26,132 nucleotides of DNA from Paramicrosporidium saccamoebae KSL3 (Eukaryota; Fungi; Cryptomycota), in the NCBI GenBank assembly GCA_002794465.1, contig MTSL01000075.1, positions 22,239 to 48,370 on the forward strand, given 5' to 3'. The notes beneath the pieces were generated by a model. The model worked only from the letters and a program-made list of their open reading frames with translations. It did not search any database and had not been told where the DNA came from. Made by a program: the position numbers and the translations under genes. Of this stretch, positions 156 to 22,306 are shown piece after piece (position 1 is the stretch's first letter; each line of letters starts with the position of its first letter).

Positions 156-770
156 ATGAGCCTTCAGGTGCGATTTGAAAGGTGTGAATGGGCGTCAGCA
201 TCATTGACGCGTGTCAGAGATGCATTAGATGTTGCCAATGTTTCATTGACCAAAGGGCAGCGTGTGCAATATACACTGAGACTGTACCAGAGGAGTGGCG
301 ATGATGCCTCCACCCAGCCAGTGCTAATAGGCCGGTCGTCGGAAGAGCCAACCGTCTGCTGGATTTCTGGCACAGGCGGACAAATCTACAAGGCAAGTGG
401 AGAGATGGAGACAATTGTGACTAAATTATACGAAGGAGCCTACAAGGCACGCCAGTCCATTGTTATAGAGGTACCCTGTGCGTCTGAGGTCTAAGGTGAA
501 TAGGTCACAAAGTGCCTGGTTCGAAGTGTTGGAATTAGCTTTGGGACCCTGAGTGTGGGCTCTGTGACTCTTGGAGTGCTCGTCATGGTAACATTTCAAT
601 TGCTAAATGTATTGATCTCATAGATGGAAGGAGGGACGAGGGAACTCTTAGAATCCTACCTGCCTTGTAAATATTTTCCAAATCTTGCCGTGATGCATTC
701 GCTGGACCATACAAGCACGGAAGAGGACCTGATGACGGTCCTGTGCAACATCATTCCCATTATTATATAA
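156..770 (+). CDS. MED20: Mediator subunit Med20/Srb2-like protein; exons 156-470, 504-587, 624-770
   Basis: Removing GT-AG introns 471-503 (33 nt) and 588-623 (36 nt, GCTAA branch-like) gives a continuous frame ...METIVTKLYEGAYKARQSIVIE|VTKCLVRSVGISFGTLSVGSVTLGVLVM|MEGG...IIPIII*. The pattern resembles Med20 'FDVLMVKLKGFFQSAKASKIE...VKVGTVTMG...GISVEVE'. Family call is by recall only. Confidence 0.5.
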
Positions 771-802
771 AGGTCTTTTTTTCCTTTTCGGGCTGGATTT
801 GC

Positions 803-2527
803 ATGTCCGCATTGTCGCGGCAAGGGCGTCGTTCCCTGCCCGTTGTCAAAGGGGATGGATATCTGTGGCTGGACCGACTGCGCAACTCTTGTGCCGAGGC
901 GAGTAAGAGGTGGATGTTGCCGTCGCATCGACGACAGGTGGAGGCATTTTTGGATTTTCGCCACCCGCACGAATGGTACCCGCAGGCGCGACTTTATCCA
1001 CGCACAATATACTGCCATGTCGGGCCTACTAACTCTGGAAAGACTCATGCTGCCATCCAGCGGCTTCAGAGTGCTAAGCGGGGCGTGTACTGTGCGCCCC
1101 TTCGCTTGTTGGCAATGGAAATGTGGGAGCGTCTGAATGGTTTGGGCAAGAAATGTGCACTGCGGACGGGAGAGGTTACTTCAGGACCGATGGACGCTTT
1201 AGATGCGGAATATACTTCGGTAGACACATTGGCCTGCACTGTGGAGATGCTTGACCCAACGCGTGAATTTGATGTTGCCGTCATTGATGAAATCCAAATG
1301 ATCTCGGACGAACAGCGCGGCTGGGCTTTTACGCAGGCTTTATTGGGTGTCAACGCAAGAGAGGTCTATGTCTGTGGGGAAGAGGCCGTTGTCAATCTGA
1401 TCAAAAAGATTGCTGGTCAGAGTGGAGACAGGGTCGAGGTGATTAAATATGAGCGCCTGTCTGCATTGGTCGTGTCTGAAAAGTCCCTGGATGGAAGTCT
1501 ATCGCAATTGCAGACAGGTGACTGCGTGGTTGCATTTTCCAGGAAGCGGATTTTTCAAACCAAACTGTTGATTGAAATGAAGACTGGGAAGAAGTGCGCC
1601 GTCGTGTATGGCAATTTGCCAATGGAGAATCGATCTCTGCAGGCCAAGGCGTTCAATGAGCGTCAAGAAGGCGTAGACATTATGGTGGCATCAGATGCCA
1701 TTGGGATGGGCCTGAATTTGTAAGGTTTATTGGATTTTATAATTGGTAGGAACATACAGAGGATCATTTTCCACGACATTAAACAGCAATCCTCTGGTGG
1801 AATCCGACTGGTCCCTTCTAGTCGTATCAAGCAGATTGGAGGTCGGGCAGGACGGTTTGGATTTGGCAAAGCCGAGGGAATTGTCAGTTGTCTCCATGCC
1901 GAGGATATGGAATACATGACGGAATGTATGAAGACGCCAAACGAGGAGTATCTGGCGGCAGGACTGGCACCACCCGGACCTGTCATTGAAGAAATCAGTC
2001 GCCAATTCCCTGATCTGCCTCTTGTGGCCGTCTTGTCTGCGATCACCCATGCGGGAAAGTACTCGGCCCACTTTGTGCCCTGTTTGTCAGAAGACCAGCG
2101 ATTGGTAGCATACATGTTGGAGGAATTCCCCTCATTGACAACCACCGACAGACTAACGCTCTCCGCCGCACCGGTGCAATTGCGAGATCCTCGAATCATC
2201 TCCGCCTTCCAATGGTTTGTGAAGAGCATTGCAGAGAAGAAGCCGTGTCCCTTTCGTGTCGATTTGGGCCATCATCGACAAGCCATGGACTATCTTGGTC
2301 TTGCTGAGAGCTTCTACCGGACATTGGACTTGTATCTGTGGCTTGCAAGTCGATTTGCAGACATTTTCATAGATCGGCAAAAGGTAATGGTGAAGAGAGA
2401 AATGTGTAGCCAATTGGTCACACGTCTGCTCTCTCAAATCACTGTGTCTCGCACAGGGTCCTTTGAAAAGTCGGACATGACCACTTTGGATCAAATGCTA
2501 AAGGATGTAGATTCTCAGCCCAAATAG
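803..2527 (+). CDS. SUV3: Mitochondrial degradosome RNA helicase Suv3; exons 803-1719, 1750-2527
   Basis: Motifs HVGPTNSGKT, YCAPLRLLA, DVAVIDEIQM, VVAFSRKRIF, VYGNLP, ASDAIGMGLNL|NIQRIIF, KQIGGRAGRFG. A 30-nt intron 1720-1749 (gtaagg...tag) joins the two ORFs. First plausible ATG at 803 gives an Arg-rich presequence-like N-terminus. Confidence 0.96.
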
Positions 2528-3056: not shown

Positions 3057-3413
3057 TTAGCTCAGAAATTTGGATGCACTGTGCAAATGACAACTAGCCT
3101 GAGTAAGAATCTTCCCCGCTGCCTCAATCCGTTCCGAGACTTTCTGGATCCGTGTCTCGATCAAATCCGAGTCCCTCTCCTCAAGCACATTGTCGGTCTG
3201 CTCTTTGAACCATTTCCGAATTTGTGTTTGAGCCAGTCCAACCTCTTTTGAGACTTGGGCAACGATCCTTCGCGCGGGTAGCATGCCTTCGTGCTCCTTG
3301 TGGAGCTGGACGAGTCTCTGCAGCTGGGTGTAGGACATGCCATTAAAGTCGTCGGTGGAACAGTAGCGTTGGATCTCACACGCGAGACGACTCCGCCTGC
3401 GAACTGCTACCAT
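3057..3413 (-). CDS. Atypical homeodomain + coiled-coil protein (HD-A)
   Basis: MSYTQLQRLVQLHKEHEGMLPARRIVAQVSKEVGLAQTQIRKWFKEQ fits the three-helix homeodomain register (Q12, L13, L16, P26, L40, I45, W48, F49), followed by heptads. The listed ORF starts at GTG 3521; the first ATG is at 3413. Confidence 0.75.
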   Translation of the reverse strand: MVAVRRRSRLACEIQRYCSTDDFNGMSYTQLQRLVQLHKEHEGMLPARRIVAQVSKEVGLAQTQIRKWFKEQTDNVLEERDSDLIETRIQKVSERIEAAGKILTQASCHLHSASKFLS

Positions 3414-3567
3414 GTCGGCCAGGACAACGGGCCCGCTGGAGGGTTGACCACTTTCCTGAAATGGAAAGTGGATCGTTGATGGCACGGCGCCTTCCTTATT
3501 TGTCAAAAGTTTAATGCCCACTGAGGGGTCATGGCACTTTCAATGTTCAAGTAGCTTCACAGAAAAC

Positions 3568-3584
3568 ATGGTTTTCAAAACCAT
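3568..3584. promoter_or_regulatory. 17-bp inverted repeat ATGGTTTT-C-AAAACCAT between the two homeobox genes
   Basis: Perfect 8-bp arms with a 1-nt spacer, upstream of HD-A. The regulatory role is a guess. Confidence 0.3.
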
Positions 3585-3603
3585 ACTTTTATGAGCATCG
3601 CAA

Positions 3604-4239
3604 TTACCTAATTAGCCAACTAGGGGCAAAGTACACGAGAGAATCGGCATAGGCTCTAGATTTCTTCAATTCGTCTTCCAGCCATTCAATCTTTCTCTGA
3701 AACGACATAATCTGCCCCTCAATGTGATCGATCCTCCGCATCACTAGCTGCGTCTCGTTCTCCGGAACTCTGGGCACCTCATGGGTCGTATTGGGTTTGG
3801 AACGCTCGAGGAACCACTTTCGTATTCGGCTCTGCGACAGCCTAAGCTTTATGCTCAAACTGCGTATCTCACGACGAGACGGAAGCTTTCCACCATGCTC
3901 CAGAAATGCATGTTGAAGGTCAAACTGGTTCCGGTCGGTGAGCTGGCTAAACGTGTCACTGAAGCAAAAGGCATCCATTGGACTTGCTCTCTTTGCTCTC
4001 TTGCTTGGGACAATCGACAGGGTTCCGGTCGAGATGGATGCACAACTTGGATCACTGGGCACCTCTATTCCCGTCCGTCTCACTGTGTTGCAGACATTCG
4101 GATTCTCCTTTCCCATAACACTGTGGACGGCGGCGTCATTCTGTCCTTCCGATCGCCTGGATACACCGAAATTCCGCTCCATCCTCCGACCACATTCGCT
4201 CCATTCCTCCGGTCCAAACATGGATGTCTCCAGTCGCAT
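3604..4239 (-). CDS. Atypical homeodomain + coiled-coil protein (HD-B), paralogue of HD-A
   Basis: LTDRNQFDLQHAFLEHGGKLPSRREIRSLSIKLRLSQSRIRKWFLERS (L16, F20, P26, L34, L40, I45, W48, F49). C-terminal heptads LVMRRIDHIEGQIMSFQRKIEWLEDEL. ATG at 4239. Confidence 0.85.
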   Translation of the reverse strand: MRLETSMFGPEEWSECGRRMERNFGVSRRSEGQNDAAVHSVMGKENPNVCNTVRRTGIEVPSDPSCASISTGTLSIVPSKRAKRASPMDAFCFSDTFSQLTDRNQFDLQHAFLEHGGKLPSRREIRSLSIKLRLSQSRIRKWFLERSKPNTTHEVPRVPENETQLVMRRIDHIEGQIMSFQRKIEWLEDELKKSRAYADSLVYFAPSWLIR

Positions 4240-4305: not shown

Positions 4306-5020
4306 TCACACGCCAGCAGAGAAGCGTGTGACAATGGAGCCCCGGAGCGACTTTGTTGAGCGCGGCGTGTTGAGAGAGGTTTGAACGTCTGTGGTAATGC
4401 GCTCTCCACGTTTGCGTAGGTCAGCGGCTTGTTGTCGTTCACGGTAGGAGCGCTCCAGGAACCGGGCGTAGTCAATATAGGCGGTGAAGCACAGTATGCT
4501 CAACACAATCTACACGCCATCAGTCGGCATTATCATTGATCCTACCAGGGCCACACTAACAGAGACAAGGACAACACCCAGCACATAGTACAAGTCGAAC
4601 ACTCTTGGGCAATCGCCTGGACTGTCACAGAGTGACCTATATAGAGTCATCTTTGACAGATTCACTCCCACAATGATCGTCGCAATAATATTGAGCATAA
4701 CAGCCAGTCCGTCCAGCAGAATGAAAATCAAAATAAGCGTTCTCCGCCTCTGTCTACTCAGTCTCTTATGTCGCAAACTACCTTGAGGACAGCCGGCAAA
4801 CCGACGAGACTGACGAGCACTGCAAACCCGCTGACAATGATCTGGAATATGTTTGCATTTACAATCTCAGGGGTGATGAAAAACTTGGCGGTCAACAACA
4901 AAGAGCTGACAATCTACATTCAAGACAGCCCTCCTGCCATACTAAATCTGAAAAAATGGCTGTCCGGGCAGCAGTAGTTATGGAGCAGATTTTGAGAAAT
5001 CGGGGCTGCTCAGATTCCAT
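4306..5020 (-). CDS. Four-transmembrane (tetraspan-like) membrane protein, 205 aa; exons 5020-4943, 4913-4782, 4749-4546, 4509-4306
   Basis: Three phase-0 GT-AG introns (4914-4942, 4750-4781, 4510-4545) join MESEQPRFLKICSITTAARTAIFSDL|IVSSLLLTAKFF...VSLVGLPAVLK|RRRTLILIFILLDGLAV...CDSPGDC...YYVLGVVLVSVSVAL|IVLSILCF... It has four hydrophobic segments and a Cys pair in the second loop. Confidence 0.75.
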
Positions 5021-5398
5021 GTGAGTAAACAAAAAGGATTAATGCGGCGGTTGTAGTAAACCCTTTGTTATGGGCTTCTGATCCTTGTGGAGCTTGTGTT
5101 TATAAAAAAACAAAGGGCTGTCAGGTATTATCTATACTCTTCCGCAGTAGCAGGAATTCTTTAAATCTGGGCTGTAATTATGATATGATATACTCTCACA
5201 ATAGGCCCTTTATCCCTGGTTCTTAGACACGCACTCTTACAATTAAGCTCTAGAGTTAATTGTCATTTGCCAATTAAACTGACTTTATGGTAAAACGGTA
5301 GTGCGCCCAACTCTAGATCAAAAGGTTGAGTATTCAGATCGCTCTGTTTGACATCGATTCTGTTCGTGTTGCAGGGGCCAACAACGGGCTGCAGTCTT

Positions 5399-10723: not shown

Positions 10724-10727
10724 TAGT

Positions 10728-10798
10728 TGGTCCTACCGAGGTTCGAACTCGGGTTGTGGGATTCAAAGTCCCAAGTGCTTCCGCTACACCATAGGACC
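10728..10798 (-). tRNA. tRNA-Gln (anticodon TTG)
   Basis: Minus strand folds as GGTCCTA/TAGGACC acceptor stem, GTGT/GCAC D stem, TGGGA-CTTTGAA-TCCCA anticodon arm and CCGAG-TTCGAAC-CTCGG T arm. No intron. Confidence 0.97.
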
Positions 10799-10843
10799 AC
10801 GTCACTAGAAGTGAATTATAATTACTTGACTATGTATAATAAA

Positions 10844-12256
10844 CTATCTGTCGACCTCGCCAAACACCAAGTCGCAAGTGCCGACGATGGCAACAACATC
10901 GGCAACATAATGGCCCTTGGCCATAAGATCGATAGCGGCGAGATGGAAAAAGCCCGGGGGACGAATCTTGCACCGATAAGGGCGGTTAGAGCCATCCGAC
11001 TCGAGATAGACACCAAACTCGCCCTTGGGAGCCTCTATGGCGGTATAAGTGGAGCCGGGTGGCACATGGAAGCCCTCCGTGTAGAGTTTGAAGTGATGGA
11101 TGAGGGCCTCCATGGATTGCTTCATCTGAGCCCGGGAGGGAGGGACAATTTTGTGATCCTCCAGTCGATGAGGACCAGCGGGGAGGGTATCAATCGCCTG
11201 GGCAATGATACGCAGGGATTGACGCATCTCTTCGGTGCGTATAAGATAGCGATCATAACAGTCGCCGTTTTTTCCAATGGGCACGTCAAAGGAATAGTTT
11301 TGATAGCCGTCATAGGGCTGCGTCTTGCGGAGATCCCAGCGATAGCCAACGGAGCGCAACATGGCGCCAGAAAAGCCCCACTCAAGAGCCTGGGGAGCAG
11401 TAATGACCCCAACTCCCACGGTGCGATTGAGCCAAATACGATTGGCCGTTAACAATTCCTCCATCTCATCAATGCGGGAACTAAACTGCTGGGCCCAAAC
11501 GTAAATGTCCTGCAAAAGGCCGCGGGGTAAATCTTGGGCTACGCCTCCAGGCCGTACATAGGCGGCATGCATGCGGGCGCCTGAGACGCGTTCATAGAAT
11601 TCCATCAGCTTTTCACGCTCCTCGAACATCCATAACACTGGCGTTACTGCACCCACATCCATGGCGTGAGTGGTCAAGGCCATAATGTGGTTCAAAATGC
11701 GCGTAATCTCGCCAAATAACACGCGGATTGCTTTCCCACGCGGCGGTGACGTTACATTTAGCAACTTTTCTACAGCCAAGGAATAGCATTGTTCGTTTGT
11801 CATCATTGACACATAGTCCAATCGGTCAAAATATGGCAATGCCTGCAGATACGTTTTGTACTCAATCAGCTTTTCTGTCCCTCGATGCAGTAAGCCAATA
11901 TGTGGGTCAGCACGTTGCACCACCTCCCCATTCAGTTCCAATACTAAGCGAAGGACCCCGTGGGCTGCGGGATGCTGCGGTCCAAAGTTGATGGAAAAAT
12001 TGCGGATAGCGATGGGTGATGGCGTGGATTGGTCGACGCGGTCCGTGTCATCGGGCATGAGGTCTTCCTCTGTAATAGTGGTGCGTTGATACGCGGGACG
12101 GCGTTCCATGGGAGGCAAGTCTGCAGGATTCCGAATATGGAACTCGTCATTTTCAAGTCTCTTATCAGTGTTGCTATTTGCAAACCTCTTGCTCTCGTCA
12201 GTGTAAAGTCTATATGGCCTCCCGACCCGTCGCAAAAGTTGCTTTATAAGAAACAT
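10844..12256 (-). CDS. NDUFS2: NADH:ubiquinone oxidoreductase 49-kDa subunit (NDUFS2/Nad7/NuoD), nuclear-encoded with presequence
   Basis: [65 protein letters not shown]. Basic N-terminal extension; intronless. Confidence 0.98.
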
Positions 12257-14174: not shown

Positions 14175-14321
14175 GTGTGAGGTCATAAAGGGTCGGTGTG
14201 AGATTGTAAAGGGTCGGTGTGAGATTGTAAAGGGTTGGTGTGAAATCATAAAGGGTCGGTGTGAGGATGTAAAAGGCCGGCGGGAGGTTGTATAAATTTG
14301 GTGTGAGGTTGTGTATGAATA
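14175..14321. repeat. 21-bp minisatellite, ~7 units (GTGTGAGATTGTAAAGGGTCG), in the ARP8 / SET-gene divergent intergenic region
   Basis: Units start at 14175, 14196, 14217, 14238, 14259, 14280 and 14301. A 13-bp direct repeat TTGTGTATGAATA occurs at 14146-14158 and 14309-14321. Confidence 0.92.
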
Positions 14322-14474
14322 CGCAAAGAGACCTATCATCTTTTGTGGCTGATCTGTTGCTATCATATCGATGTAATTTATTACAGCAGTTGTGATCATA
14401 GTTTTATTATAGTGAACCATCTTTCTCAACACACACAAGCCGCTATAATAAACGAATATTCAAATTTTGCGTTC

Positions 14475-16286
14475 ATGACGGGATCCCATCTGGAGACTCC
14501 TAGTCCAATCATTGCTGGCGTTTTCACAGAAAAGTATGTGCGGAGGGAGCATTGCAGGATGTGCGGTGCTTTTGAAGTAAGGGGTAAATATGCTCCGTGG
14601 GTATTCTGTAATAATTGTGGTGAATCCTACCATCAGTCCTGCGCACCGAACGCTCCAGACCCCGAACATCCTATCCGCGGCTGGCTGCCTCCCGGATACC
14701 ACGCACGGTGGAATTGGCAGTGCCCAGATTGCCGTTCCTGCTCCACATGCAGTTCTGAAGGTGCAGAGGTGCTTGTATGTCAAGACTGCAACAAGTCATG
14801 CTGTTCCACATGTGACACTGGAATGGATATTAATTTATGCTTCTACTACCAGTGCCTCGACTGTCGGCAACAAAGGCCGCGGAAGTGTCTTGGATGCGAT
14901 AAGGAAATTTCGGGTAGCATACGTCTCAAGCTCTTCTGTCCCACCTGCAGTCAACATTCTGCATGTCCACGATGCAAAGTGCGTTTCTCAGATGACGATT
15001 ACACGCAAGAAATGGTTTCCTGTGAAAACTGCAGCAATTGGACCCATTACTCCTGCACTGGATTCACCGAAGCGCAATGCGCAGCTCTTGGTGATCCAGA
15101 GGTAAAGTTTTATTGCTGTCGTTGTGAGGCTAGTCAGGGCTTTCAACATGATGGGACCTGTGGACTGCCTGCTCAATGTTCGGGCTGCGCCGATGGAGTT
15201 GCGGAAAGCTTTTTGCTTCCCACCCAATTGCACGTAGATTTGAATGTTTTATTGCCGACAGCGTTTAGCCATCAAAAATGTTTCAACCGCAAGGGTAATG
15301 TATCGATGCTCCAGACACCGGTTATGTGGTACCGGCACGGATCGCTGTCCATATTGATCCCGATGATACTAAATGACCGCGAAATGCATATTGTCTTTGT
15401 CGGCTGGCATCCACGGAAGCACCGCCAGCGAACACGATTTTTATTCCGGATTTCATTCAATAACAAGTGGAATATTGAAAGCGTCCAAGGCACCCTTGAT
15501 GGGATGTCAACCACCGCCAAGACTATCTCTGCTACGTATAGAATGCTAGCCAGATCAAATCCTGTGGATTTCAAGAGAATCTTTCAGATCTTTAATGCAT
15601 TTAGGGAAAGGCTAAAGTCGTTCTACCAGGCCCCTCCTGCGGTCCATCCTATCAAAGAAAAGCCTTTGCCGTTGCAAGGACCCCCTCTACCGCCATCAAG
15701 CGAATTGCCGACTAAATATGACAGTATTCGTCTGAAAGAGTATGTGAGGAAATGGAAGAAGCCCATAGTTATAGAGTTGAAAAGGTCTCTTGCTGAGCAA
15801 CAAGTATTTGACAAGGTTGCTGCTGTTAATAATCGAAACAACCTTCAGCTGCACCCTCATCGTCATCTCCACGTTAGACGTTCACACATTGCGGGATTTG
15901 GTCTCTTTACTTCTCAGGCCATCACTGCGGGAACCAAGATTTTTGAATACTGCGGCGAGCTGATCGGTCAACTGGTTGCTGATCGGCGCGAATTACTATA
16001 TGGTTTGCTACCACTTCGACGCCACGATTGCTATCTGTTCCGCCTCTCAGATGACCGCATCATTGATGCCACTCTCCGTGCCAACGCGGCACGGTTTATC
16101 AATCATTCATGTGCCCCCAATTGCGAGTCCAAGGTAATATGCAGTAGTCGGATTGTCATAGTGGCACTGCGAGATATTTCAATGGGAGAGGAGCTCTCCT
16201 ACGATTACAAGCTTAGTAGTGAGGGAGTGGAGGATGTTGCACCCTGTTATTGTGGAGCCCTTGAGTGCAGAAAGTTTATGAATTAA
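14475..16286 (+). CDS. Compact trithorax/MLL (KMT2)-like histone H3K4 methyltransferase: 3 PHD fingers + FYR-like region + SET/post-SET, 603 aa
   Basis: PHDs CRMC..CNNCGESYHQSC..WQCPDC, CSTC..CQDC..CSTC..CLDC and CPRC..FSDDDYTQEMVSCENCSNWTHYSC..YCCRC. SET RSHIAGFGLF, FEYCGELI, CYLFRL..IDAT..NAARFINHSCAPNC, GEELSYDY. Post-SET CYCGALECRKFMN. First ATG in frame is 14475. Confidence 0.9.
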   Translation: MTGSHLETPSPIIAGVFTEKYVRREHCRMCGAFEVRGKYAPWVFCNNCGESYHQSCAPNAPDPEHPIRGWLPPGYHARWNWQCPDCRSCSTCSSEGAEVLVCQDCNKSCCSTCDTGMDINLCFYYQCLDCRQQRPRKCLGCDKEISGSIRLKLFCPTCSQHSACPRCKVRFSDDDYTQEMVSCENCSNWTHYSCTGFTEAQCAALGDPEVKFYCCRCEASQGFQHDGTCGLPAQCSGCADGVAESFLLPTQLHVDLNVLLPTAFSHQKCFNRKGNVSMLQTPVMWYRHGSLSILIPMILNDREMHIVFVGWHPRKHRQRTRFLFRISFNNKWNIESVQGTLDGMSTTAKTISATYRMLARSNPVDFKRIFQIFNAFRERLKSFYQAPPAVHPIKEKPLPLQGPPLPPSSELPTKYDSIRLKEYVRKWKKPIVIELKRSLAEQQVFDKVAAVNNRNNLQLHPHRHLHVRRSHIAGFGLFTSQAITAGTKIFEYCGELIGQLVADRRELLYGLLPLRRHDCYLFRLSDDRIIDATLRANAARFINHSCAPNCESKVICSSRIVIVALRDISMGEELSYDYKLSSEGVEDVAPCYCGALECRKFMN

Positions 16287-19059: not shown

Positions 19060-20642
19060 TTATTGAATTGCACTAGCAAACTCTGCAAGCAATTCTGCAG
19101 CAGTATCTTCTGTAGTTGGCGAAACCGCCAAAGCTGACGCTGACAAAATAAGGGGAGATGGAACATTTGGCGGAGCCAAGGGGGTGGGTGTAGACGCCGA
19201 TGCAGATGTGGACAGTGTGGATAGTGTGGATAGTGTGGATAATGTGGGTAATGTGGATAGTGTGGTTGGTGCAAACGAAGAGTCAATAGTCTTTTCAGTC
19301 ACACCCGTCAATTGTACAGAAGCATCACTGACGGGTGTGGAAGCATTAGTCAAAGAAGCACTTGGGTCTTCTTCCAGTCCATTTCTTTTCACTTGTTCAT
19401 CACCAATAAATAATTCCGACTTGAGCGGTCCATCAGGTCCCATCTTTAACACCAGTTTGATTGGTGATTTCGGCAAAGCATCTTCTAGTCCAAATGATTT
19501 CTCCATCTCAGATGATCCCTCCCGCTCAGATAATTCCTGCCGCTCAGATGATCCCTCCCGCTCAGATGCTTCCTCCAGTTCAGACGTCTCCTCCAGTCCG
19601 ACTGAATCATTACCCACTTCTATATCCTCGTCCATCCGCGATTCGGCCAGCACCTTTTCCAACTCAATCTTTGCAACCTTTTGACTTCTCATTGCAATAC
19701 GTTCTTCCCTCGTCATGACCCGTCGCTCTTCTTTCTTGGAAATGCGAGGACCCTCTTCCAGCTCATGCACATATTTAATACGCTCATTAGCAGCAATGCG
19801 GGAAGATCGTTTTCTTGACTCGGTCAGAGCGATTCGCTGTATCTCCAACTGTTCCTTCTTCATAAGAGCCTTGACTCGTCGTTCTTCTTCAATCAAAATG
19901 GGCTCTGCAACCGAAAAGATTGTTCTTTGAAGGTGCTTCAGTAGCGCCTTGTCGCTGCCGCGACGGCTGTTACTGAGTGAATTATCCTGAAGAAATTGGG
20001 TCCAAGATGGGATATCCCAAGCCACACATTGCCAATCATTGTCCTTTTCACCTTCTTCAAACAGCCAACAGTCGCCCAAGAACCAGAAAGAGTGTCCTCG
20101 TTTGTCTTTGCCCAAAGGCTCTACCCGCCATGCAGCTCCCTTGTCACGTATCCGACTGGTAAGTGTTTCGTCGTTGAACAACTGGAAAGAGCACAGACTA
20201 AAGAGCACAGTCAGGCGCTGGGTGTTGTCGAGTATGGACAGCGGTGGCCACTTTTTGAGGCCCGTGTCCATGTCTATGAACGGCTCCAGGTGTATACAAT
20301 TTGCGCCCAGATGTCTCCGATATTCGCGGTTTATGGTCTGTGTCAAGCATTTGTCACTACACTGTCAGAACCTGGCCATTGTTTTACGAGCTAGTCTTGG
20401 AGCGGTGGAGACTCTTTATAAGCTTTTTGTAAAGCTTCTCGATGGGGGAATCACCCTCGCTACCTATAATGGGCTCATCGATGAGCCTCTCCAATGCCTA
20501 TACATTAAGGTCCTGCGGCCAAGATTACAAATGGCGTCATCGGCTCAAGCCCCAGTGCCTCCCAAAACAAGTGCAAAAACTGCAGCGTGTTGGCGAAAGC
20601 ATAGCTGTCCCGCACGCGATCCCCCTGTTGTGCACCGTCCAT
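19060..20642 (-). CDS. RSF1/CECR2-like DDT-WHIM1-WSD chromatin-remodelling accessory protein; introns 20498-20528, 20357-20387
   Basis: FANTLQFLHLFWEALGL (DDT-like), LSILDNTQRLTVLFSLCSFQL (WHIM1), RVEPLGKDKRGHSFWF...WQCVAWD (WSD), RKRSSRIA, then a low-complexity tail. The start codon is uncertain. Confidence 0.75.
19206..19268. repeat. Coding 9-bp microsatellite x7 (T-L-S repeats)
   Basis: RTGTGGATA units encode TLSTLPTLSTLSTLSTLST on the minus strand. Confidence 0.85.
19507..19596. repeat. Coding 18-bp minisatellite x5 (REGSSE/LEEASE repeats)
   Basis: CTCAGATGATCCCTCCCG-like units at 19507, 19525, 19543, 19561 and 19579. Confidence 0.85.
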
Positions 20643-21499: not shown

Positions 21500-22306
21500 T
21501 TATTTCGAGGATTCGCGGTAGCATTCTATACTGCACACTGGGATTTTCAGATGAGAGTGCATATATCTTTTAACGTTTTTACAACCCTTCACTGAACAGA
21601 GCAAAGGTTTGGGGTAGTCAACTGGTTTCTGCATAATCAATGGCACACTCTGGCCTAGAATCAGTACATTCTTGTCCTTGGTAATGACCGACCTAGCCCC
21701 GTAAGGCTTAATTCCATCCAACTTTGCGTCTGTCTTTTCAACCTCTGTATCTTGAGTCCTCATCTTTTTCGACCTACTCGACTGCTTTTGCAATAACCTT
21801 TGTATAGTATCGGCCTTGCTTTGCTCTAATTTCTGGTCGCGCATCATCAACCTCCTCCTACTCTTTTCACTCTTCCTCAACTGTTCCTCTTCCGTCAATT
21901 CTCGAGGTAAGAGGTGCTCTGTGGATGGCATCGAGTCGAGACTTCCCGAGAGGAGAGTTCGCTGGCGTGCCGTTAGTTTGGCGGGGGAGGTTTCGCTGCC
22001 GGAAACTGAAGTAAGAGAGAGGGCGTCATCATTGCTTTCTGCTTCGGATAGGGAGAGGGACAGGTCGCTTCCAGGCTCGGCAGCTTCAGTGGACTCGTCA
22101 GGAGACTCGTCAGAGGATTCTGGCTCGGGTGGGGCAACCTTTTTCGTGGCACGGACGGACCTGGCTGCCGGTAACTGGCGTTTCGACGGTACTTCGCGAG
22201 CAGTCCTGGTGCTTCTCTTGGACTTGTCGGGTAGGACGGTTACAGATTCTACTGAGCTTGCACTTGCGCTGCTGCTACTCTTTAAAATAATCCTCTTGGG
22301 AGGCAT
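21500..22306 (-). CDS. IES2: INO80 complex subunit B / Ies2 (PAPA-1 domain + zf-HIT)
   Basis: LTARQR, LTEEEQLRKSEKSRRRLMMRDQKLEQSKADTIQRLLQKQ (PAPA-1), and C-terminal CSVKGC..KRY..SHLKIPVCSIECYR. Confidence 0.85.
   Translation of the reverse strand: MPPKRIILKSSSSASASSVESVTVLPDKSKRSTRTAREVPSKRQLPAARSVRATKKVAPPEPESSDESPDESTEAAEPGSDLSLSLSEAESNDDALSLTSVSGSETSPAKLTARQRTLLSGSLDSMPSTEHLLPRELTEEEQLRKSEKSRRRLMMRDQKLEQSKADTIQRLLQKQSSRSKKMRTQDTEVEKTDAKLDGIKPYGARSVITKDKNVLILGQSVPLIMQKPVDYPKPLLCSVKGCKNVKRYMHSHLKIPVCSIECYRESSK

Follow-up and report, generated by a model that had tools for sequence, protein, structure and literature searches.

A conserved tandem pair of divergent homeodomain and coiled-coil genes in Paramicrosporidium saccamoebae with a putatively non-canonical DNA-contact surface

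Two open reading frames (ORFs) in the same orientation on the minus strand of contig MTSL01000075.1 from the amoeba parasite Paramicrosporidium saccamoebae (Rozellomycota) encode divergent homeodomain proteins, here called B and A. They lie in a stretch of 26,132 nucleotides (positions 22,239 to 48,370 of the forward strand of the contig), which is referred to as the window and from whose first letter all coordinates are counted. The homeodomain is the textbook DNA-reading module, with near-invariant contacts made by N51, R53 and a basic N-terminal arm. Neither N51 and R53 nor a basic arm with R5 was found in B, in A or in the consensus of their family. The explanation that we favour, as a somewhat probable one, is that B and A form a conserved two-gene cassette of dimerising nuclear regulators in which the DNA-contact surface would be non-canonical or lost. 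The pair is made up of the following elements.

3604 to 4239, minus strand: gene B, an ORF of 211 amino acids plus stop codon; orthologues P0002, P0003 and P0004
4192 to 4239, minus strand: N-terminal motif of B, MRLETSMFGPEEWSEC, with the family pattern M-[RK]-x-[DEG]-x-S..F...W.[DE]C from Met1
3988 to 4002, minus strand: basic cluster KRAKR of B, at homeodomain positions -12 to -8; candidate nuclear localisation signal
3778 to 3963, minus strand: divergent homeodomain of B, 62 residues, with two extra residues in loop 1 and F5, I31, L50, E51 and S53
3661 to 3744, minus strand: predicted four-heptad coiled-coil segment of B, VMRRIDHIEGQIMSFQRKIEWLEDELKK; heptad score 0.9, with none of 300 shuffled sequences scoring as high
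3607 to 3642, minus strand: C-terminal aromatic motif of B, SLVYFAPSWLIR, conserved in B-clade relatives
3414 to 3603, minus strand: spacer between B and A, 190 nt
3057 to 3413, minus strand: gene A, an ORF of 118 amino acids plus stop codon (P0005); orthologues in L001, L003 and L004
3174 to 3359, minus strand: divergent homeodomain of A, 62 residues, with two extra residues in loop 1 and F5, V31, K50, E51 and T53; net charge 0
3078 to 3161, minus strand: predicted four-heptad segment of A, IETRIQKVSERIEAAGKILTQASCHLHS; heptad score 0.7, with 6 of 300 shuffled sequences scoring at least as high

The initial annotation had read B and A as two paralogues with a homeodomain fold, and this was borne out by sequence and by structure prediction, in which the fold of both proteins was predicted to be that of a homeodomain. 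A BLASTP comparison aligned A with B over 100 residues at 29% identity (E=1e-11), a stretch that includes the motif given in the initial annotation. The AlphaFold2 models of both proteins showed three helices of homeodomain length followed by a long C-terminal helix, and the predicted local distance difference test (pLDDT) over the homeodomain was 87–92 in B and 84–92 across both models. When the models were compared to the PDB with Foldseek, every one of the top 50 matches was a homeodomain, for B and A alike, with template modelling (TM) scores, normalised to the target, of 0.78–0.91. Superposition on engrailed gave a root-mean-square deviation of 0.9–1.0 Å and TM scores of 0.78–0.83 for B and about 0.90 for A. 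The matches of a profile of seven orthologues to PDB sequences were also nearly all homeodomains (best single-domain E 7.5e-4). Among 50 cores of the wider family, 43 matched the Pfam Homeodomain PF00046 at E<=0.01 (best 1e-9), as opposed to at most 3 for any other Pfam family. With hhalign, the family profile was aligned over 48 columns to seven canonical homeodomains at 96.1% probability (E 2.8e-9), with a gap in loop 1. The hydrophobic core was kept throughout 65 family members: L16 in 62, Y/F20 in 52, L/I34 in 47, I/L/V40 in 62, I45 in 61, W48 in 61 and F49 in 58. At the computational level, from modelled structures and sequence comparison, homeodomain fold and homology are established for B and A.

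The two proteins differ in their build. B begins with its N-terminal motif, followed by a disordered linker, the KRAKR cluster, the 62-residue homeodomain, a Pro-containing linker, the four-heptad coiled coil and the aromatic C-terminal motif, whereas A consists of a basic cluster RRRSR, a 62-residue homeodomain and a coiled coil, without the N- and C-terminal motifs of B. The 211-residue ORF of B was 100% identical to PSACC_01009, which carries the UniRef name 'Homeobox domain-containing protein'. The public model of PSACC_01009 (P0001) is 221 residues long, starts at Met7 and has its last residue spliced off to add SYLNIESAMTPQWALNF (3522-3625, 4221-4239). This C-terminal splice (...SWLI followed by SYLNIESAMTPQWALNF) was rejected and the unspliced ORF of 211 residues looks like the correct model of B, because the orthologues retain the Met1 motif and end in WLIR, WLFR or WLYS directly before the stop codon. 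We also considered a single spliced gene with two homeodomains, but a GT...AG splice across 3522-3606 is out of frame with A. Since, in addition, the stop codon of B is found at the same position in four lineages, B and A are taken as separate genes. The longest ORF of A (3057-3521, 154 amino acids) opens with a GTG start and is probably too long; the true extent is probably 3057-3413, with 118 amino acids, because the orthologues begin at a matching Met (MVAVRRRSRL and MVCRRRRSRL). No conserved promoter or non-coding motif was found in the spacer beyond the closest relative, and the window and the loci of the relatives held no additional copies, only two per locus.

To place the residues, W48 and F49 were set in register via profile–profile alignment to canonical homeodomains. 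The substitutions listed in the initial annotation were all present: position 5 is F in both proteins, position 31 is I in B and V in A, position 51 is E in both, and position 53 is S in B and T in A. Position 50 is L in B and K in A. The extension of loop 1 was likewise confirmed. The profile alignment located the insertion between positions 22/23 and 24, with a length of exactly two residues, and loop 1 had seven residues in the AlphaFold2 models compared to five in engrailed. This insertion was constant in nearly all 65 members, with one residue fewer in the A orthologue of L003. A TALE-like H23, which had also been proposed, did not stand: His was found in only 12 of the 65 members, and hhalign placed it inside the inserted pair. 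Conservation was high over helices 1 and 2, at G and L-P-S of the loop and over the first half of helix 3, and collapsed past F49. The conserved residues of helix 2 were R28 (59 of 65), R/K29, L31, L34 and S35, and those of the N-terminal half of helix 3 were Q42 (64 of 65), R/K44, I45, R/K46, K/R47, W48 and F49; positions 53–58 were unconstrained and, in B, a Pro at position 55 ends helix 3 early. Position 51 was E in 15, D in 14, K in 9, N in 5, A in 5 and Q in 4 members, thus acidic in 29 of 65, and mostly acidic in both the A and B clades. Because all conservation stops at F49, Glu51 is, by this alignment, a lineage feature and not class-defining. The proposal of an atypical class holds for the constant two-residue insertion, the non-basic arm and the coiled coil, which recur in about 60 further clusters, and fails for Glu51 as its defining residue.

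Compared to canonical homeodomains (PF00046), the B/A family has the same three-helix fold, the same core (L16, F/Y20, L34, L/I40, I45, W48 and F49) and the same pattern P-S-x-x-E/R...L-S...L-S-x-x-Q/R-I-K/R-x-W-F across helices 2 and 3. In contrast, loop 1 of the family is longer by two residues, the basic arm has given way to F1 and F5, and L/I/V31 with Q42 stand instead of R31 with E42, two residues that pair in canonical homeodomains; the family is without N51 and R53, unconserved past F49, and much lower in net charge. The arm (positions 1–9) was hydrophobic or acidic, with F1, D/N3, F5 (47 of 65) and D/N6. The mean family charge was -0.5 in the arm and -0.6 at positions 50–60, regions in which engrailed and Antennapedia have +2 to +5, and it was +2.6 in helix 2 and +2.8 in the N-terminal part of helix 3. 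The net charge of the domain was 0 in A, +5 in B and +3.6 as the family mean, compared to +9 to +12 in engrailed, Antennapedia and MATalpha2. Across the family, the canonical minor-groove arm and the residues that read the major groove are thus gone, and a different basic patch is conserved. This combination would fit a nucleic-acid contact that has moved elsewhere on the domain as well as a surface that binds protein, without telling the two apart.

The arm had been described as non-basic with its basic cluster displaced upstream, and this was correct for both KRAKR in B and RRRSR in A, which lies likewise 8–12 residues upstream of homeodomain position 1. The corresponding region was rich in R and K in many family members, although not strictly conserved. 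The heptads noticed at the C-terminus of both proteins were also recovered. The a/d residues of the four heptads are V-I-I-I-F-I-L-L in B and I-I-V-I-A-L-A-L in A. In the AlphaFold2 model of B, the long helix spans model residues 87–131 with a pLDDT of 82–95, and in that of A a helix of residues 62–117 is continuous with helix 3, with the pLDDT dipping below 50 at residues 77–81. At its extreme N-terminus, the Met1 motif of B is shared with P0003, P0007, P0012, P0021 and P0016, and was listed for P0043 and P0047 as well. Many family members start in a similar way, with variants in other clades such as MIFNLSPFSVAKDWSDC, MRFGYENFF and MKIDLSKVTF. The motif might act as a degron, in targeting or in docking. 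The C-terminal pattern of the B clade is Y-F-x-x-x-W-L, with the forms YFAP[ST]WL[IF]R, FFTQGWLYS, NYFSTSWL and TYFSPFWL in the relatives, each of them ending at the stop codon; the A clade is without both the Met1 and the aromatic motifs.

An exhaustive search with a hidden Markov model through 1.84 billion representative proteins returned 92 matches at E<=1e-3, of which about 30 were multi-homeodomain proteins and about 60 were small single-domain proteins of the same build as B and A. These single-domain relatives are 100–360 residues long with a domain of constant length, and share the signature M-x-x-[FLY]-C-F-x-x-x-F ... L16 ... Y/F20 ... G-x-L-P-S-R-R/K-x-L ... S ... G-I/L-S-Q-x-R/K-I-R/K-K/R-W-F. 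At least three clean heptads were present in 49 of the 60, 8–67 residues past the homeodomain and often after a linker with proline. Outside P. saccamoebae, nearly all occurrences of the family were in environmental or read-archive assemblies without annotation. None of the 30 cluster representatives looked up (in Logan, JGI, ENA and one in NCBI) carried a function name and a few were called 'hypothetical protein'. A word-index protein search with an alignment of 50 members returned three proteins only, and scans of metagenome contigs with family alignments gave pattern matches, none of which was confirmed by tblastn. A described family with this signature was not found in the literature searched, the coverage of which was incomplete. 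Judged by their sequences, B and A are members of an undescribed family that combines a homeodomain with a coiled coil.

Both genes are under strong purifying selection. Compared to the closest relative, the JGI metagenome contig L004, the ratio of non-synonymous to synonymous substitutions (dN/dS) was 0.087 over 146 codons in B and 0.037 over 52 codons in A, with synonymous divergence (dS) of 0.68 and 0.92, respectively, in agreement with the earlier proposal of selection rather than decay. The order of B, A and a convergent helicase gene was the same in three related uncultured genomes (L001/L002, L003 and L004).

743 to 2527, plus strand: SUV3 RNA helicase gene (Pfam DEXQc_Suv3, Suv3_C_1 and SUV3_C), convergent with A and serving as synteny anchor

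In a neighbour-joining tree of 65 cores, an A clade (A of the window, L001A, L003A, P0013, P0018, P0019, P0022 and P0042) stood apart from the B clade, so the duplication that gave rise to A and B predates these lineages. Cluster P0018 (A-type) and cluster P0006 (B-type) both include members on contigs of 8321, 18176 and 2256 nt, sizes that are identical between the two clusters. In the same way, the A-type P0042 and the B-type P0031 were each on a contig of 3675 nt. This suggests that the two genes are linked in two more distant lineages too.

We propose the following scheme for the cassette, which would have both proteins acting as transcription regulators. A and B would be nuclear, because of the basic clusters upstream of the homeodomain. 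They would dimerise via the heptad helix and most likely do so as an A–B heterodimer, given that the two genes stay linked. Neither would be able to contact DNA in the canonical manner of a homeodomain, because the hydrophobic M-x-x-[FLY]-C-F-x-x-x-F replaces the basic arm and positions 50–58 are unconstrained and on average acidic. The conserved basic surface, with R28, R/K29, Q42, R/K44, R/K46 and K/R47, would lie on helix 2 and on helix 3 in its N-terminal half, and such a surface would suit a nucleic-acid contact of a different helix-turn-helix style or the binding of a protein.

Several observations weigh against this proposal or parts of it. The conserved R28, R44, R46 and K47 could still support DNA binding, which may thus be retained. 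No complementary charge pattern at the e and g positions of the heptads was obvious by eye. The linkage in the distant lineages rests on matching contig sizes and not on sequence that was read, and the distant member P0061 (L005 530-913, Logan SRR25266749) is without a partner in its 2-kb contig, where it adjoins a Sedlin/TRAPPC2-like gene; the pairing of A and B may thus be missing in parts of the family. As for the fold, the AlphaFold2 alignments were shallow (5–6 sequences), with an overall pLDDT of about 75 and a predicted TM score of 0.42–0.44, and neither protein reached the PF00046 gathering score of 22.9, with 16.0 bits for A, 18.0 for B and 20.4 for the 78-residue core of B.

These sub-threshold Pfam scores would also suit a chance resemblance of another helix-turn-helix domain (transposase, CENP-B or psq, or sigma region 4), as would stray weak matches to HTH_Tnp_1, Sigma70_r4 and MerR among family members. 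That B and A are no homeodomains at all, or decaying pseudogenes, is nevertheless scarcely credible when the 43 of 50 members that match Homeodomain, the hhalign probability and the uniform homeodomain fold matches are set against it, and with dN/dS far below 1 and ORFs intact in four lineages the proteins do not look like products of decay. A more serious alternative, if still an unlikely one, is that the homeodomains bind no nucleic acid and that B and A are adaptors or co-factors like HOPX or ZHX/Homez, recruited via the homeodomain surface and the coiled coil. The missing conservation at positions 50–58, the frequently acidic position 51, the non-basic, hydrophobic arm and the low net charge of A and of the family would all fit this, and ZHX homeodomains were among the PDB sequence and fold matches. 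Opposed to it are the near-invariant basic residues R28, R/K29, R/K44, R/K46 and K/R47, which resemble a surface that contacts the nucleic-acid backbone, and the net charge of +5 that B retains. HOPX, ZHX and Homez resemble the B/A family in that the fold is kept and the canonical DNA contacts are degraded; they differ in having no specific sequence kinship with it, the family being a single domain with a coiled coil in microbial eukaryotes. According to a review of homeodomain classes, HOPX consists of a homeodomain only, and ZHX/Homez are vertebrate proteins with several homeodomains each. By analogy, the nearest functional counterparts of B and A would be such degraded or dimerising homeodomains together with homeodomains that are coupled to a zipper.

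It is doubtful that A is a trimmed, microProtein-like antagonist that titrates B into inactive heterodimers. The A clade is indeed without the two terminal motifs kept by the B clade and by other clades, and the two genes stay adjacent, but A is strongly constrained over the whole homeodomain and not over the zipper alone. A mating-type or cell-type locus comparable to basidiomycete HD1/HD2 or yeast a1/alpha2, which had been raised as a possible role, is very improbable. As in the fungal HD1/HD2 systems (bE/bW, Sxi1/Sxi2 and a1/alpha2), two homeodomain genes are adjacent and their products could plausibly heterodimerise. Those pairs consist of one TALE and one typical homeodomain, and the basidiomycete ones are multi-allelic, with the two genes transcribed divergently. 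In contrast, B and A are paralogues of a single class, both with the two-residue insertion, lie in tandem on the same strand and occur together in every haplotype seen, of which the window contributes a single one, and their dN/dS of 0.04–0.09 indicates strong constraint instead of allelic hypervariability. P. saccamoebae was reported in the genome paper to be diploid and to possess the complete complement of meiosis genes, which would leave room for such a locus, but the same paper puts an HD1/HD2-like pair at PSACC_01945/01946, another locus, and describes no MAT-like heterozygosity there. The sex-locus synteny of zygomycetes and microsporidia (triose-phosphate transporter, HMG and helicase) was considered and rejected; the neighbouring helicase is SUV3, and no HMG-box or triose-phosphate-transporter gene was found among the larger ORFs scanned in the 26-kb window, so that no sign of this synteny was seen there.

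The proposed dimerising cassette, with its putatively non-canonical contact surface, can also be set beside two further classes of homeodomain. In TALE proteins (PBC, MEIS, KNOX, BELL, MATalpha2 and CUP9), loop 1 is likewise lengthened by an insertion and position 26 is likewise a proline in a 'PYP'-like context, but these proteins have exactly three extra residues and keep N51 and R53, and with its two extra residues the B/A family falls outside the TALE class. The review of homeodomain classes states that loop insertions arose many times and that only the three-residue TALE insertion is a useful class character; the likeness to TALE is therefore no evidence of kinship, and the two-residue insertion alone is unremarkable. 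The initial annotation had also suggested a geometry like that of plant HD-ZIP proteins, in which a homeodomain is likewise followed by a leucine-zipper-like dimerisation helix. In HD-ZIP, however, a canonical homeodomain is joined to its zipper directly at the end of helix 3, whereas the B/A family has lost the DNA-contact residues and has a linker of 8–67 residues, often with proline. Because of this variable linker, and in B because of P55 and the Pro-containing linker before the heptads, the geometry is not that of HD-ZIP, and the combination of homeodomain and zipper in the B/A family probably arose independently.

Divergent and non-DNA-binding homeodomains and combinations of homeodomain and zipper were known before, and UniRef already labels PSACC_01009 as homeobox-containing. 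What sets the B/A family apart is that the fold and helices 2 and 3 are under strong selection, yet exactly the canonical contacts have been released, and that a conserved hydrophobic N-terminal motif and a coiled coil have been added and the genes are kept together as a two-gene cassette. Once characterised, such proteins would provide either a new mode of nucleic-acid binding by this fold or a clean example of a homeodomain as a protein-interaction module, and more regulators for the almost unknown biology of the Rozellomycota. A bolder idea, drawn by analogy and in our view improbable, is that A and B form an obligate heterodimer which controls a life-cycle transition, and whose surface for nucleic acid or for a partner has shifted onto helix 2 and the N-terminal half of helix 3. 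At the same low level of probability, such a transition might be between the spore and growth inside the nucleus, or might be a cryptic step of sexual reproduction, both in Paramicrosporidium-like organisms and in the eukaryotes that carry relatives of the pair. If this were true, the A/B heterodimer would stand beside the HD1/HD2 and KNOX/BELL heterodimer switches as their independent counterpart.

The SUV3 gene is split into ORFs 743-1723 and 1730-2527 with an apparent intron of 30 nt (GTAAGG...TAG, 1720-1749, plus strand). Removal of this intron restores ...GLNL|NIQRIIFHD, where the vertical bar marks the junction, and the position of the split is identical in L001 and L003. The gene upstream of B (4306-5032, minus strand) encodes a small multi-pass membrane protein in three to four ORF pieces, probably with short introns between them; it has no Pfam match and is found at the same position in L001 (5029-5692, plus strand). 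The other genes of the window are ordinary eukaryotic housekeeping genes and encode, besides the SUV3 helicase, Yju2, myotubularin, the 49-kDa subunit of complex I, an actin-related protein, a SET/PHD protein, AATF, caleosin, VPS9 and Der1. The nuclear gene for the 49-kDa subunit (10844-12256, minus strand) is followed directly, on its downstream side, by a tRNA-Gln gene (anticodon TTG; 10726-10799, minus strand). Immediately upstream of the SET/PHD gene (14343-16286, plus strand) is a 21-bp tandem repeat, GTGTGAGATTGTAAAGGGTCG, at 14175-14312, with about 5.6 copies and 81% matches. In-frame tandem repeats of 9 bp and of 18/36 bp were found at 19207-19265 and 19494-19594, within an ORF of 428 amino acids (19060-20346, minus strand) that has no Pfam match.

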